DNA of 11,531 bases from IMG/VR virus record IMGVR_UViG_3300008216_001605, positions 1 to 11,531 of that record; one strand, written 5' to 3'. Made by a program: the position numbers and the translations under genes. Position 1 is the first letter of the stretch. Each line of letters begins with the position of its first letter. The notes beneath the pieces are model-generated. The model was not told the origin of the DNA, searched no databases, and was given only the letters and a program-made list of their open reading frames with translations. Of this stretch, positions 2,878 through 8,854 are shown piece by piece.

Positions 2878-3801
2878 ATGGCTAATGAACGACATAATGA
2901 TGCACGAGAATGGGAGATAGATTCATCTACCCGACAATCTGTTCATCCTTATACAAAATATTCTCCCTTCAGAACTGCAACTTCTACTACAGCCGCTAAT
3001 TTATTAGCTATTGATAGGGGGGAGATTGCAGTAAACTGGGTCACTAACCCTAGAATAGAGGCTACAGATGTTAGTATGTTTACAGCTACGGGAGCTACTG
3101 TTGCTAGAGATACGGGCCAAGCAGCTGTAGGGTCAGCTTCTCTCCTCACTAATCCAGGCAATGCTGGAGCAGGTGAGGGTTTTTATTGGGTTTCTCCTAG
3201 TGTCCCTTTTAGTGTAACTCCTCAACATCTCACGGCTCAATGTGAGGTTAGGGGAGCTTCTGCATCAGGAAGTGTTAAGATACAGATTACTGATGCCTCT
3301 GGTGTGGAACTTGCAACTTCTGCTGATACTAATTTAACCACCAGTTTTGCACAAATTACTGCTTCTTATTCCATAGCAGGCAGTACTGCCGCAGCAACGT
3401 ATAGAGTTTATGTTGTTAGTGCTGCAAACCATAATATTAACTGGTATACTGATAAGATAATGTTTGAAGTACGGGAAGATACTAATGCTGTATCGACTTA
3501 TGTAGATGGAGCTTCTGGTTTGAATTATGAATGGTCGGGAACAGCTAATGCATCTACTTCTAGGAAGCGTCCTGCCATGTCTGTCATACGTGGGATACAG
3601 ATTAAAAATGAATCTGGGACTAGTGCTGAAATTGTGTATGTATCTTTTGATTCAACCGCTTCTACTACTACGGGAATCTCAGTATTAGCGGGGGCAACGT
3701 ATGAATCTAATTTTCCTATAGACTTTAGAGAGAATGTCTCCATAATATCTGCTTCTGGAACTCCTACTGTTAGTGGAGTAGTGTGGGGAGTCAATGGTTA
3801 A
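2878..3801 (+). CDS. Virion structural/decoration protein with a carbohydrate-binding-like beta-sandwich insert
   Basis: 307 aa, rich in Ala/Ser/Thr/Gly, SD AGGAG. NWVTNPRIE...YVDG resembles phage CBM-like jelly-roll domains; C-terminal beta-strand domain IQIKNESG...IVYVSFD...GISVLAG. Confidence 0.55.
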   Translation: MANERHNDAREWEIDSSTRQSVHPYTKYSPFRTATSTTAANLLAIDRGEIAVNWVTNPRIEATDVSMFTATGATVARDTGQAAVGSASLLTNPGNAGAGEGFYWVSPSVPFSVTPQHLTAQCEVRGASASGSVKIQITDASGVELATSADTNLTTSFAQITASYSIAGSTAAATYRVYVVSAANHNINWYTDKIMFEVREDTNAVSTYVDGASGLNYEWSGTANASTSRKRPAMSVIRGIQIKNESGTSAEIVYVSFDSTASTTTGISVLAGATYESNFPIDFRENVSIISASGTPTVSGVVWGVNG

Positions 3802-5300
3802 TGGGTACCTCTACGATTCAAACTGCAGTAGGTAAAATACCTAGTCCGTCTAATTGGGCATTCAATACTGAGATGTATCAGACTGTTGGTATTGATGCTA
3901 CCATACTTCCTATTGAAAAACAAGACAGTGGTAAGGTCACATTAGAAGATATTTCTAGTGCCCTTGATGAATATAAACGTTTATTTAAAGCGGGAATAGC
4001 ATCTAAAGCCGAACTTATAACTTTGTCTAGAGCTTATCCCGATGATTCTACTTATTCTAAAGCTGTCTCTAAATTAAGTGAAGGCGATGCGATGGTCTTA
4101 GGTGGCCCCGCATCGGTGGAATTAATTGATAGAGAAGGCCATTTAATTACTACACAAGCTTTAGAAAAAGCTTTTCATAAATATATGGATAACTTCCGTA
4201 CTAGGAATACAATGGTACTCCACAGTGACGTTCAGGTAGGGTGGGCCTTGCCTGCTTATATTTCTAAAGGTGGTCAGATATTTAAAGCTGGGGTGGGAGA
4301 AAACGGTTTATTCTTCATTACGGAATTGAGGGACGATACCAAAATAGCCCAACGGGTTATGGATCAAGTTAATGAGGGAAAGCTAAAGAGTTATTCTATT
4401 GCAGGGAGTGCCACCAAAGTACAGAATATGCAGAAAGGTTTACAACCCTATATGCAAGTAGACGAAATGGAACTGGCCGAAGTTACGGTATGTGAGAAGG
4501 GTGTAAATCAAAGTGCTGGATTTGATATATTAAAGGCTAAAGGAGCCGTTACTACTTGTATTGATGGTAGTTGTCTCATACAAAAACAGGAATGTGATGG
4601 TAGTTGCGTTATTCAGAAAGAAGAAGGTAAAATTACCCAGATAGATTCAGGCTATAGAAATGCTACTGATGTAGAAATGAAAAATGGTATTATGTGCGGT
4701 ACCTGTAAATTTTTTAATAAACAAGAAGGGACATGTGATATAGTCGAAGGAATGATTGAAGATCACATGTACTGTAAAGTGTTTGCACCATTAGATGAAT
4801 CGCCAACTATTGATGAAGGAAGGGAGTTAATTATGTTAATGGAAAAATCAGACGGGTCAATTGATTTTGTGGGGTCATTCTTGAAATGGATAGAGAAACA
4901 AGGCACATCTTCATCGCCAAAAGAAATGGCTGCGACCTTTGCCACTCTATTGAATACTGCGGGAAGGCAAGCAGAACACCACCAATTACTACGGGAGTAT
5001 GGATTTCCTTCTGAGCAACCCCCCGAAGCTATGAGATATACCCCAGTCATTGAAACAGAAACAGATGACTTTGGAATTCCTGTACACATGAAACCCCCTT
5101 GGACTGTAAATGAAGCTGGGTCGCATCTAGGAAAGAAATTAGATGCTGATGCCCCTACTTATGATACTTCTATAGCTGCTAAAGCACATAAAGATTTGCA
5201 AACTAATATGCATCCTTGGTATTCTACAGAAATCTCAGTGTCTTTTCCAATACGGAAAGCTTTTTCCAAATGGTTTTCTGATAATGAATTCTATTTATAA
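3801..5300 (+). CDS. HK97-family prohead (capsid maturation) protease with long N- and C-terminal extensions, including a HiPIP-like domain
   Basis: ATG 3801 overlaps the upstream stop (TAATG), SD GGGGAG. Core at ~4092-4540: GPASVELIDREGHLI, catalytic His in VLHSD, Ser in LKSYSIAG, and LAEVTVCEKGVN. CxxC-x9-C-x12-C at 4695-4775. Confidence 0.85.
   Translation: MGTSTIQTAVGKIPSPSNWAFNTEMYQTVGIDATILPIEKQDSGKVTLEDISSALDEYKRLFKAGIASKAELITLSRAYPDDSTYSKAVSKLSEGDAMVLGGPASVELIDREGHLITTQALEKAFHKYMDNFRTRNTMVLHSDVQVGWALPAYISKGGQIFKAGVGENGLFFITELRDDTKIAQRVMDQVNEGKLKSYSIAGSATKVQNMQKGLQPYMQVDEMELAEVTVCEKGVNQSAGFDILKAKGAVTTCIDGSCLIQKQECDGSCVIQKEEGKITQIDSGYRNATDVEMKNGIMCGTCKFFNKQEGTCDIVEGMIEDHMYCKVFAPLDESPTIDEGRELIMLMEKSDGSIDFVGSFLKWIEKQGTSSSPKEMAATFATLLNTAGRQAEHHQLLREYGFPSEQPPEAMRYTPVIETETDDFGIPVHMKPPWTVNEAGSHLGKKLDADAPTYDTSIAAKAHKDLQTNMHPWYSTEISVSFPIRKAFSKWFSDNEFYL
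4562..4626 (+). repeat. 33-nt (11-aa) tandem duplication inside the protease gene
   Basis: tgatggtagttg at 4562-4573 and 4595-4606; encodes DGSCLIQKQEC / DGSCVIQKEEG. Confidence 0.8.
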
Positions 5301-5332: not shown

Positions 5333-5360
5333 TTGACTTTCTTCTCAATTAGTGTATAAT
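5333..5360 (+). promoter_or_regulatory. Sigma70/SigA-type promoter
   Basis: TTGACT (5333-5338), 16-nt spacer, TATAAT (5355-5360), in an intergenic AT-rich gap. Confidence 0.75.
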
Positions 5361-6440: not shown

Positions 6441-6627
6441 ATTACTTCATTTAATTAATAGACTAAGAGGAATTTTTCTTTCTATGGAAGAAAGAGAAAA
6501 AGAAGTACGTGGGAATGAAACAAAAATATTAGCTTTAAATCTAGAAATAAAAAATCTAAAGGAAGATCAAGATGATGCTATGAAAGCTTTAGATGATTTA
6601 GAAACAGTTATTAAAAAATGGGAATAA
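6430..6627 (+). CDS. Coiled-coil hypothetical protein
   Basis: ATG 6430 after GGAGAAGGGG; heptad pattern ILALNLEIKNLKEDQDDAMKALDDLE. Confidence 0.65.
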   Translation: MTNRLLHLINRLRGIFLSMEEREKEVRGNETKILALNLEIKNLKEDQDDAMKALDDLETVIKKWE

Positions 6628-7085
6628 TAACGACTAGAATTTTAGATCTCACTAGGGCAGTGACCCCACCTACTTTAACAGAACCTTTAGATGAACATGA
6701 TACTGTGTGGATAGCACAAAGATTATTGGATGCCAATCTGATAGGCGGTGCAATGCAACGCAAAACCCTAGACAGTAAGTATTGGACTTGCACCCGTTTG
6801 GATTTCGATGCTATAATCAAGTGGGATTGGACGGACAATAAAAAATATGTAGCAGAAAAATATGATTGCGATAACTTTGCCTTTAGCTTTAAAGCCAGGA
6901 TGGATAGAAAATTTCATTTAAACAATGTGGGATTGGTGGTTGACTATTCGGGTGGACACGCTTATAATTGTGTCGTCTTTTCGGATGGCACGGCCGAACT
7001 CTTTGAGCCACAGAGCGATTTATTCACGACCTCCCAATTAGGGACTGGATACTATAAATGTGAATCGGGATTTATATTAATATAA
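6618..7085 (+). CDS. Papain-like/transglutaminase-like cysteine protease (MOA lectin C-terminal, Agglutinin_C-like domain)
   Basis: Motifs YDCDNFA (Cys), GHAYN (His) and FEPQ (Glu) in the family order, preceded by D-x-x-Y. Confidence 0.75.
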   Translation: MGIITTRILDLTRAVTPPTLTEPLDEHDTVWIAQRLLDANLIGGAMQRKTLDSKYWTCTRLDFDAIIKWDWTDNKKYVAEKYDCDNFAFSFKARMDRKFHLNNVGLVVDYSGGHAYNCVVFSDGTAELFEPQSDLFTTSQLGTGYYKCESGFILI

Positions 7086-7312
7086 TGATTAATGATAATG
7101 AAGAAAAATATAGGGAATTATTAGAGGCCGTTAGACCCCATTTTCCAAATGACCTAGCACAAGCATATGCTATAGTAACTGCTACCATTGGCCCTATCTT
7201 TAATACCGTTTTATTACAATTAGTGTGGAGACAATTAGAATTAGAATATATTCCTGATTGGACGAAGGCTCTACCATATGAAGTCTTTATCCAACGATTT
7301 AGTCTGAATTAG
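7085..7312 (+). CDS. Hypothetical protein
   Basis: 75-aa ORF coupled to the upstream gene by a TAATG overlap. Confidence 0.65.
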   Translation: MINDNEEKYRELLEAVRPHFPNDLAQAYAIVTATIGPIFNTVLLQLVWRQLELEYIPDWTKALPYEVFIQRFSLN

Positions 7313-7450
7313 TATCTTCCCAGTTAAATCGGGGGAGTAAGGAGGTGATCCATTCTCACCTATGGGGGCGTCTGAAAATGATGCCCCCAACCACTTGACT
7401 CATTTGGCTAAATGTGCGAAGATGGTGAAAATAAATTTTGAGAGGTGAGC
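7313..7450 (+). ncRNA. Structured RNA element with an extended 16S-complementary sequence (putative sRNA or translational leader)
   Basis: Stem 7316-7321/7332-7337; TAAGGAGGTGATCCA at 7338-7352; stem AGGTGA (7343-7348)/TCACCT (7356-7361); 10-bp GC-rich stem 7363-7372/7380-7389. Confidence 0.55.
7362..7448 (+). CDS. Possible 28-aa leader ORF
   Basis: MGASENDAPNHLTHLAKCAKMVKINFER*. Its TGA lies inside the SD of the next ORF, but the start is at the base of a hairpin and the SD spacing is long. Confidence 0.25.
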   Translation: MGASENDAPNHLTHLAKCAKMVKINFER

Positions 7451-7525
7451 ATGGAAATTAATGACCCAGTTAAAGCTTTTTGGATATTTATTATCGTTGG
7501 CATATTAGCATCTATGATATTATGA
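7451..7525 (+). CDS. 24-aa hydrophobic single-TM peptide (not in the ORF track)
   Basis: SD GAGGTGA (7442-7448) close to ATG 7451; MEINDPVKAFWIFIIVGILASMIL*; stop overlaps the next ATG (ATGA). Confidence 0.55.
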   Translation: MEINDPVKAFWIFIIVGILASMIL

Positions 7526-7821
7526 ATACAGAGAATAATGAATCCCCCATGCCCGAATGGGCCAGATTAGGAACTGAATTAATAGAAGGGTCAATGGAGA
7601 CACCTTTTTATGAGGAAGCAGTTCGTTTATTAAAGACCCCTGGAGTAGACCCAGCTTTATATATGTTTTTCTGCTCTTTACCACAAGGATACATATATAT
7701 AACTAATAAGTATCCGGTAGGTACGTGGTCAGTTGAAGAAGTAAGAAGATTAATGCAATGTGCTTTTATGTTAGGAACATATGTAAGGAAATCAGTTGAG
7801 GAAGTAGAAAAATTATGGTAA
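7522..7821 (+). CDS. Hypothetical protein
   Basis: Start revised to ATG 7522 (ATGA coupling) rather than TTG 7480. Confidence 0.65.
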   Translation: MNTENNESPMPEWARLGTELIEGSMETPFYEEAVRLLKTPGVDPALYMFFCSLPQGYIYITNKYPVGTWSVEEVRRLMQCAFMLGTYVRKSVEEVEKLW

Positions 7822-8029: not shown

Positions 8030-8854
8030 ATGAGTTTATCTAAAATTGAAATTCATGAGAAGGTTTTATACCCAGTCACAAAAGTTTTAGCTGGGCAAGC
8101 AGGCGGAAGTGGAGTATTGGTTTATAGTGAAGAAGACCCCGATAAACCTAATAACTACATAAATATAGCTTTGACATGTCAACACGTTATTGATGGGGCC
8201 ATTAAAGTATCTGAACAATGGGATAACGTTCTTAAAAAGGACGTAAAGACTGACGTACTAGAAGAAGTTCGTATTGAAGTCTTTGACTATGACAAGAGTA
8301 AAGTAGTGTCTGCTAATTCTACGACAGCCCAAATCATTGCGTATGATAAACACCATGATTTAGCTGCTGTTAAATTAAATAATACTAGACCTATGGCTCA
8401 TGTAGCTAGTATTATTCCCAAAGAAGAAATAAAAGACTTACAAGTTGCTGATCCTATATGGGTTAGCGGTTGTTCGCTCCTTCATGACCCCTTTCCCAGT
8501 CCAGGAAATCTAACGTACCTTAGAGAAATCATTGACCAGAAATCATATGTAATGCAGAATGCTCCTAGCATCTTTGGAAATTCTGGTGGTGGTTTGTTCC
8601 ATGGAGATACTGGACATTTATTGGGGCTAACGTCTAGAATTACTTCTACTCAATTAGGATTCGGTATAGATATTATGACATGGATGGGATTTAGCACCCA
8701 CCCAGAGAGATTATACGAGTTCTTTGAACACCAAGAACTTCAGTTTTTGTTTGACTCTACGGATAATTATCATGATGCATTACATCGTAGAGACAGTCGT
8801 AGGCACGAAGCTTTACGAAATCTCTTGTTTGAATCTAAGGGAGAAAGTCCATAA
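8030..8854 (+). CDS. Trypsin-like (S1/HtrA-like) serine protease, stand-alone
   Basis: GSGV, ALTCQHV (His), HDLAAVKL (Asp), IFGNSGGGLF (Ser); SD AGGAGG. Confidence 0.9.
   Translation: MSLSKIEIHEKVLYPVTKVLAGQAGGSGVLVYSEEDPDKPNNYINIALTCQHVIDGAIKVSEQWDNVLKKDVKTDVLEEVRIEVFDYDKSKVVSANSTTAQIIAYDKHHDLAAVKLNNTRPMAHVASIIPKEEIKDLQVADPIWVSGCSLLHDPFPSPGNLTYLREIIDQKSYVMQNAPSIFGNSGGGLFHGDTGHLLGLTSRITSTQLGFGIDIMTWMGFSTHPERLYEFFEHQELQFLFDSTDNYHDALHRRDSRRHEALRNLLFESKGESP

Follow-up and report, generated by a model that had tools for sequence, protein, structure and literature searches.

A tract complementary to the 3′ end of 16S rRNA lies between two genes of a tailed-phage fragment from a deep-ocean metagenome (IMG/VR record IMGVR_UViG_3300008216_001605; the whole contig of 11,531 nucleotides (nt) is the window analyzed here, and every gene in it is on the + strand). 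The orphan "super Shine-Dalgarno" tract, at positions 7338..7351 (+), belongs to a structured RNA encoded on the + strand; we take as established this structure, the selective constraint on the tract, its lack of any gene to serve, and its position at the junction between genes. Binding of the 30S ribosomal subunit, and all that would follow from it, is what we infer. Our preferred reading, held tentatively and at a little under even odds, is that the element is a 30S docking site without a start codon, which would park a ribosome at the boundary between two transcription units and protect and insulate the RNA much as stabilizing Shine-Dalgarno (STAB-SD) sequences do.

Conservation of the 16S-complementary tract

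The sequence TAAGGAGGTGATCCA at positions 7338-7352 (+) was the only match in the window to the complement of the 16S 3′ end when zero to two mismatches were allowed. The original prediction had described this perfect 15-nt complement, with hairpins on both sides, in the only sizeable gap of the gene run, and this description was confirmed; the gap of 138 nt between the stop codon TAG at 7310-7312 and the conserved start ATG at 7451 is the largest within the run. We take the tract to be complementary to 16S positions 1529-1542 (Escherichia coli numbering), with bases 1-14 opposite 1542-1529, presumably the 13-nt free tail plus one base. Presuming that the host has the common 16S tail, the duplex is predicted at −26.7 kcal/mol. 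Predicted 16S pairing at the 23 real gene starts of the phage ranged from −1.2 to −13.5 kcal/mol, and the next-best site on either strand of the window reached about −17 kcal/mol. Each related locus examined likewise had one such strong site, at the element, and a few weaker ones elsewhere in coding regions.

Twelve distinct homologous loci were retrieved by way of the neighboring 99- and 155-amino acid proteins, the motif playing no part in their selection. The element was present at all 12, even though the 99-amino acid neighbor was only 61-78% identical. Seven further distinct copies came from a DNA pattern scan of JGI, TARA, and GenBank metagenome assemblies; the pattern fixed most of the motif, and these copies, uninformative on its conservation, were used for the hairpins only. 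The 19 distinct sequences derive from independently assembled JGI, TARA, and ENA metagenomes, a recurrence not attributable to chance, and one version (L029; L-numbers denote homologous or look-alike loci compared with the window) was recovered again in two ENA assemblies by protein lookup.

Within the protein-anchored set, the 14-mer was the most conserved stretch, with 12 of 14 columns invariant and a mean majority fraction of 0.99, compared with 0.58-0.80 for the promoter spacer and coding flanks. The fifteenth base, at 7352, varied (A, U, or G), so that the full 15-mer originally proposed is kept in its first 14 bases and not in its last. Conservation thus appears to stop at base 14, the point at which the accessible 16S tail presumably ends. 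The only changes in the 14-mer were A>G in L007 and C>U in L009, both of which would still wobble-pair with 16S rRNA; this is only suggestive of retained pairing. The pentanucleotide UAAGG, predicted to be single-stranded, was invariant among the protein-anchored homologues, and because internal structure does not explain this invariance, an external partner is indicated. As judged from the sequences, the only evident partner is the 16S tail, and the comparison supports the view that complementarity to the tail is itself under selection.

Among the outcomes that the original prediction had named as speaking against it were homologous loci with only an ordinary 5-8-nt Shine-Dalgarno (SD) sequence or lacking the stems; instead, all 12 protein-anchored loci keep the element. 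A chimera was also excluded. Past base 15 there is no likeness to the 16S gene or to the 1525R/1541R primer; identity does not run on into helix 45 or a primer, and the copies come from independent assemblies with varied flanks. In Rfam (release 15), nothing matched the window's element at E ≤ 1. An alignment-based search for distant members with the 99-amino acid neighbor again returned the 12 loci only, and distant relatives that carry the 155-amino acid gene with another downstream module are without the element. No paper describing the element was found in a literature search.

Structure of the + strand RNA

Folding of positions 7305-7400 (+) gave −35.2 kcal/mol (z = −3.09), a value equaled by none of 200 shuffled sequences; the minus-strand fold (z = −0.78) was no better than shuffles. 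Hairpin 1 (7316..7337, +; −7.9 kcal/mol) pairs CUUCCC with GGGGAG around a 10-nt loop, hairpin 2 (7343..7361, +; −6.3 kcal/mol) pairs AGGUGA at 7343-7348 with UCACCU at 7356-7361 around a 7-nt loop, and hairpin 3 (7363..7389, +; −20.3 kcal/mol) has a GC-rich stem of 10 bp. The first and third are the flanking hairpins of the original prediction, which missed the second, the one that masks the 3′ half of the tract: AGGUGA is that 3′ half, and UCACCU is a short anti-SD mimic. UAAGG was 73-93% unpaired in the ensemble and the UCC of the hairpin 2 loop was also unpaired; the tract is therefore partly exposed.

Covariation was found in hairpins 1 and 3 and not in hairpin 2. When 18 sequences (16 distinct) were aligned, 97.5% of cells in helices 1 and 3 were paired, compared with 44-54% with slid partners; double-sided changes occurred in five pairs, four of them in hairpin 1, and the covariation score was reached by none of 500 shuffles. 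Hairpin 1 showed compensatory double changes in four of its seven pairs, with 97% of cells paired (16 distinct sequences), and the pairs of hairpin 3 survived U-A, U·G, and C-G variants as well as stem extensions in L063 and L073. Because these two helices covary, the invariance of the tract does not reflect a general lack of divergence. UCACC of hairpin 2 was invariant in all 18 aligned sequences, and the loop of this hairpin varied. As invariant arms give no covariation, the pairing of hairpin 2 we can only infer; the simplest reason for the constancy of UCACC would be that its partner within the tract cannot change.

Hairpin 3 has the GC-rich stem-loop of an intrinsic terminator; directly 3′ of it there is no U tract in the window, where its tail reads AACCACUUGAC and a terminator scan made no call. 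The same scan called hairpin 3 a terminator in the homologue L005 (tail AAUUAUUUGA), and several homologues have a tail richer in U that runs into the −35 box. A swap of partners between hairpins 1 and 3 as an antiterminator was rejected, as the arms of hairpin 1 vary with no matching change in hairpin 3.

Every non-Watson-Crick pair in the alignment is G·U on the + strand, and therefore the functional molecule is the + strand RNA. A minus-strand RNA that mimics the 16S tail was rejected, given a fold like that of shuffles and wobble pairs that turn into mismatches. The same pairs would be A-C mismatches on the other strand, which counts against a site acting as DNA, whether it served as a packaging signal, as a recombination core also found in the host 16S gene, or as an operator or activator site for the promoter next to it. 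The element does adjoin the −35 box in most members and does contain three inverted repeats, as such a site might. However, it folds better than shuffles on the + strand only, its stem lengths change (L063 and L073), the promoter lies ∼40 nt off in L029, identity with 16S ends after 14-15 bases, and the element was found in none of the genomes of 185,579 species; we consider a DNA-level site highly improbable. An attP/16S integration core was specifically rejected, the identity being too short and the three matches in the 185,579-genome search being unrelated coding sequence.

Absence of a gene start

The ATG at 7362 lies 16 nt past GGAGG (7341-7345), just as the original prediction had it, and opens a 28-codon open reading frame (ORF; 7362..7448, +) that is not a gene. 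This ATG is missing in six homologues (L004, L005, L006, L007, L008, and L012), and one-base indels among the homologues shift the frame. The start window has no conserved AUG, GUG, UUG, or near-cognate codon, the loop there varies in length and sequence, and candidate mini-ORFs from ATG 7362, GUG 7345, or AUU 7352 were rejected as not conserved. The expectation of poor initiation from ATG 7362 was thus borne out insofar as there is no usable start; the codon is not merely misplaced, as had been thought, but absent in those six homologues. The accompanying argument that an over-long SD sequence hinders initiation fared less well, as length alone is no bar: in viral contigs, 43 of the 112 exact 14-mer copies stand ahead of real ORFs.

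Those 43 copies are what an ordinary, if very strong, ribosome-binding site (RBS) for a short or non-AUG ORF has in its favor. At the element, no start codon 4-12 nt downstream opens a conserved ORF; neither AUG nor GUG nor UUG is kept at 3-13 nt, the loop varies, and the frames are not conserved. An ordinary RBS is, in our estimate, the least credible of the explanations considered. The tract shares two properties of STAB-SD sequences, an SD-like stretch with extended complementarity to the 16S 3′ end (14 nt, presuming the common host tail) and the lack of an associated start codon. The original view of a non-coding element on the + strand is supported, and the interpretation as a whole is supported in part; it had offered three possible functions, namely sequestration of 30S subunits, STAB-SD-like protection, and sensing of free ribosomes.

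Position between two transcription units

The element begins 0-6 nt past the stop codon of whichever gene lies upstream (a 75-amino acid gene, the 155-amino acid lectin-like gene, or others). In the window, the 75-amino acid ORF (7085..7312, +) ends with the TAG at 7310-7312, and hairpin 1 follows after 3 nt. On the other side, 6 nt past hairpin 3, lies a conserved σ70-type promoter (7395..7423, +; −35 TTGACT, 17-nt spacer, TG, −10 GAAGAT). The homologues keep TTGAC, 17-18 nt, and TAnnnT, often with the extended TG, as the spacer sequence varies; the match to consensus is 12 of 12 in L058 and 10 of 12, with TG, in L005. L029 has its promoter ∼40 nt farther from hairpin 3, which shows that the promoter and the element can be separated. 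From this arrangement, we read the region as a compact junction comprising the end of one transcription unit, the element, and the start of the next. Being 3′ of a stop codon and 5′ of the promoter of the next genes, the element cannot be a 5′ stabilizer of the transcripts of that promoter, and such a role would require read-through transcripts.

Two other arrangements were considered and rejected. Similarity just 5′ of hairpin 1, which might have indicated a dedicated promoter, is accounted for by the coding ends of the upstream genes, and pairing of UCACC with the SD sequence of the next gene is at odds with the variation of that SD sequence and the constancy of UCACC. Gene order around the element also differs between loci. 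In L188 (a 64.7-kb contig), a trypsin-like block precedes the capsid gene, and many small genes (Mom-like and DUF932) come after the element; in the window, it is the trypsin-like block that comes after the element. The element is thus a marker of a recombination or module boundary.

Look-alike modules in other phages

At least 119 loci, from at least 73 sequence families among viral contigs, matched a pattern of the 13-mer AAGGAGGTGATCC, a gap of 1-6 nt, and ATCTC. Modules of 13-mer, ATCTC, and hairpin thus occur in unrelated viral contigs of gut, soil, and marine origin (examples within L076-L290 are L201 at ∼780-850 on the minus strand, L228, and L103:5600-5690 (−)). Among the matches listed, the stop codon of the upstream ORF abuts the motif in 31 of 73 families, a canonical terminator lies within 135 nt in 27 of 73, the next gene start is a median of 119 nt away, and the modules typically stand ∼60-330 nt upstream of head or tail genes. 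Annotated downstream genes encode scaffolding protein (three), prohead protease, and tail tubular protein (two); annotated upstream genes are diverse (holin, helicase, HNH, and nucleotide metabolism).

Enrichment of ATCT was assessed in orphans, meaning non-redundant exact 14-mer copies with no start codon. ATCT occurred within the next 12 nt in 26 of 60 orphans; a control region gave 3 of 60, and true RBS copies gave 2 of 30. The SD core is imperfectly complemented by (U)AUCUC(C), and its 3′ half by (A)UCUCACC; three members of the clade of the window read AUCUCACC, and hairpin 2 of the window therefore belongs to this wider theme. The enrichment is real, and its structural reading is unproven. 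General self-sequestration was rejected for the wider class, as pairing of orphan SD sequences with the next 23 nt gave −6.49 kcal/mol and shuffles gave −6.28 kcal/mol in a crude energy test. A "start-stop" reading, in which ATC is followed by a stop codon, was likewise dropped (6 of 26, not above expectation). After the 13-mer, UAUCU is common, with TATC in 17 of 26 orphans. We take UAUCU to be complementary to AGAUA of the 16S 790 loop, at the 785F primer site, and on this basis, it could conceivably make contact with the 30S platform as well.

The 13-mer is also invariant in a second, unrelated family (L305-L312 and L076), retrieved in part via the upstream protein; it is kept there even where a 5-nt insertion shifts the stop codon, and the neighboring hairpins and canonical terminator covary. 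One family of the wider class (L151, L181, and L195) has a true CCUCCU anti-SD sequence ∼35 nt downstream that is predicted to pair with the orphan SD. No gathering-score match over the motif was found in Rfam for 14 related or look-alike loci, and the literature search yielded no publication on the motif. A DUF3800-I RNA (Rfam RF02969, 91 bits) was detected at L139:2886-2994 (−), ∼1 kb from a look-alike module, and is probably unrelated to it.

The cultured T7-like Pseudomonas phage LUZ100 carries the module at 20917-20948 of OP329100.1 (L292:601-632), 13 nt past a tRNA-Asn and upstream of gp40 and the capsid gene; Rfam gave no match for this copy at E ≤ 10. The published long-read transcriptome of LUZ100 places an RNA 3′ end, T15, at 21029 with 74% apparent termination, where ARNold predicts no terminator (PMC10204088). 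This end lies ∼110 nt past the motif.

Taken as a class, these modules might constitute a widespread and previously undescribed kind of phage RNA that captures 30S subunits in a dead-end complex and serves as a trap or availability sensor governing late expression. In each member, a tract perfectly complementary to the 16S tail would then be combined with a short anti-SD mimic and a strong hairpin at a module boundary. We regard this generalization as possible, if rather doubtful.

LUZ100 also bears on the idea of a trans-acting decoy or sensor, the one favored by the original prediction, whereby the ∼75-nt segment of hairpins 1-3 and the tract would be freed from the 3′ end of a late transcript as a small RNA, occupy the anti-SD of free 30S subunits, and either rebalance late translation or report ribosome availability. 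There, the motif follows a tRNA rather than an ORF, and the mapped 3′ end lacks a predicted terminator, as would suit a discrete, stable non-coding RNA. The architecture of the element (a 5′ hairpin, an exposed and conserved single-stranded seed, and a strong 3′ hairpin) resembles that of small RNAs derived from 3′-untranslated regions, and the presence of the module in many unrelated phages would suit a universal target. Set against this, the phage's own genes use ordinary SD sequences, so that a sponge would harm the phage too; no promoter or processing site marks a 5′ end, and each genome fragment examined holds a single copy. On balance, we consider a decoy or sensor unlikely.

A further explanation is a ribosome-dependent attenuator, in which a 30S subunit on the nascent tract prevents or alters downstream hairpin folding and so sets read-through into the next unit. 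Hairpin 3, terminator-like in some homologues, starts 11 nt past the tract, and the footprint of a bound 30S subunit would cover it. The canonical terminators found in 27 of the families would also fit. In the window, however, hairpin 3 is without a U tract, and the terminator of the wider class usually lies ∼35 nt past the tract with another hairpin between, outside the 30S footprint. Covariation supports no alternative pairing of an antiterminator kind, hairpin 1 varying in its arms and hairpin 3 not. An attenuator therefore seems to us improbable.

Much the same judgment applies to a classical STAB-SD acting on read-through transcripts, which we also rate as improbable, if anything slightly more so. 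Here, a cut upstream in a long late transcript would be followed by 5′-to-3′ or 5′-end-dependent decay that a tract-bound ribosome halts ahead of the next cistrons. The element does travel with the downstream module and not with the upstream gene, and its tract lies 113 nt ahead of the next start codon; the distance in the cry3A STAB-SD is said to be broadly similar. In other families, scaffold, protease, tail, or capsid genes begin 56-330 nt past the module, and processing of the tRNA in LUZ100 would make a new 5′ end just ahead of the module. But the genes have a conserved strong promoter of their own past the element, so that their main transcript is without it, and a terminator or terminator-like hairpin usually intervenes as well.

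Gene content of the window and host

Other genes of the window (all on the + strand) include those for an SU10-type major capsid protein (1035-2375), a protein with a prohead-protease domain (3783-5300), the 155-amino acid lectin-like protein (6618-7085), and a trypsin-like protein (8030-8854). Directly after the junction come a conserved hydrophobic ORF of 24 amino acids (7451..7525) with its own SD sequence, GAGAGGUGA, and the 99-amino acid gene (7522-7821), whose start is overlapped by the stop of the 24-amino acid ORF (ATGA). A search of the window for tRNA and tmRNA genes found none.

A canonical intrinsic terminator (2384-2411; 11-bp G/C stem and U tail) directly 3′ of the major capsid gene shows that the host uses standard intrinsic terminators. 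A second near-consensus promoter (5333-5360; TTGACT, 16 nt, TATAAT) in the 76-nt gap 3′ of a 505-amino acid gene has no SD-type element ahead of it. The closest GenBank virus relatives of the capsid protein are haloarchaeal tailed viruses and a Methanofastidiosa virus, at ∼26-30% identity overall and ∼27% for the haloarchaeal ones; despite these relatives, the promoters of the window are clearly bacterial. To look for cultured relatives, GenBank phages were searched by BLAST with the window and with the element, without a match.

Discussion

The 30S docking site that we favor can be described by the following minimal model. The structured non-coding RNA would form the tail of the upstream transcription unit, with exposed UAAGG as a toehold for the 16S rRNA 3′ tail. 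Pairing would spread by strand displacement through the weak hairpin 2 to give a duplex of 13-14 bp, the predicted gain over hairpin 2 being about 20 kcal/mol. As no start codon is available and a very stable hairpin begins 11 nt further on, the 30S subunit could not initiate and would stay parked; the parked ribosome may be the very one that ended translation 3 nt before the element. It and hairpins 1 and 3 would jointly act as a roadblock to ribonucleases at the RNA end and insulate the two units. Protection and insulation of the RNA end appear to be the most likely consequence of docking, and the LUZ100 3′ end without a predicted terminator fits a protected fragment.

Several points weigh against this model. 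The downstream genes have their own promoter past the element, known STAB-SD elements guard the RNA downstream of themselves from 5′-to-3′ decay, and no precedent was found for protection of a 3′ end by a parked ribosome. Hairpin 2 shows no covariation, and the sequence of hairpin 3 is conserved far beyond what a structural block would need, which the model leaves unexplained. The 16S complementarity presumes that the host has the common tail, and two substitutions bear on the wobble compatibility, the chance of both being compatible being ∼22% as estimated from base composition. Because its position does not correspond to that of a 5′ stabilizer for the main downstream transcript, we class the element as an orphan-SD or ribosome-docking element and not as a STAB-SD.

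The nearest known systems are nonetheless the STAB-SD of Bacillus thuringiensis cry3A and the leaders of Bacillus subtilis aprE and hbs, which share with the phage element an SD-like tract, extended 16S complementarity, and the lack of a start codon. Ribosome-bound SD-like stabilizers without a start codon are established, and tracts of the cry3A/aprE/hbs type hold a ribosome that blocks ribonucleases (PMC4113751, PMC3997798, and PMC5737220). They differ in standing near the 5′ end of the protected RNA, in hosts with RNase J, and in pairing over ∼9 nt, compared with 13-14 nt in the phage tract. Unlike them, the phage element has a tract half-masked by its own anti-SD mimic, follows a stop codon, and precedes a terminator-like hairpin upstream of the next promoter. 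Pseudomonas, a phage of which belongs to the wider class, is not known to have RNase J. The polypurine stabilizer of phage SP82 is reportedly a phage precedent for a ribosome-dependent 5′ stabilizer.

Entrapment of the 30S subunit at operators of the rpsO/S15 type, where an SD duplex forms and an adjacent stable structure bars the mRNA from the decoding channel so that the complex stalls, is akin to the stalled duplex proposed here beside a stable structure. That system differs in involving a repressor protein and a real start codon and in regulating the gene concerned. The 3′ cap-independent translation enhancers of plant RNA viruses, which have 18S rRNA complementarity and are thought to recruit the small subunit, are likewise untranslated viral elements near a 3′ end; they are eukaryotic and make a long-range contact to the 5′ end, of which none was seen for the phage element. 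Finally, the SD-sequestering hairpins of translational coupling resemble hairpin 2 in masking an SD sequence right after a stop codon, where a terminating ribosome would open them, but are followed by a start codon, and the phage element has none that is conserved.

If a 30S subunit is truly held, selection would have shaped this phage RNA to pair with all of the free 16S tail while making no protein. The STAB-SD idea, so far tied to a few Gram-positive leaders, would then also cover the ends of transcription units in phages; alternatively, the element would add an RNA-based means for phages to manipulate ribosomes. LUZ100, cultured and with a published long-read transcriptome, offers a ready experimental system, and the module could serve as a portable part to stabilize or insulate synthetic operons.
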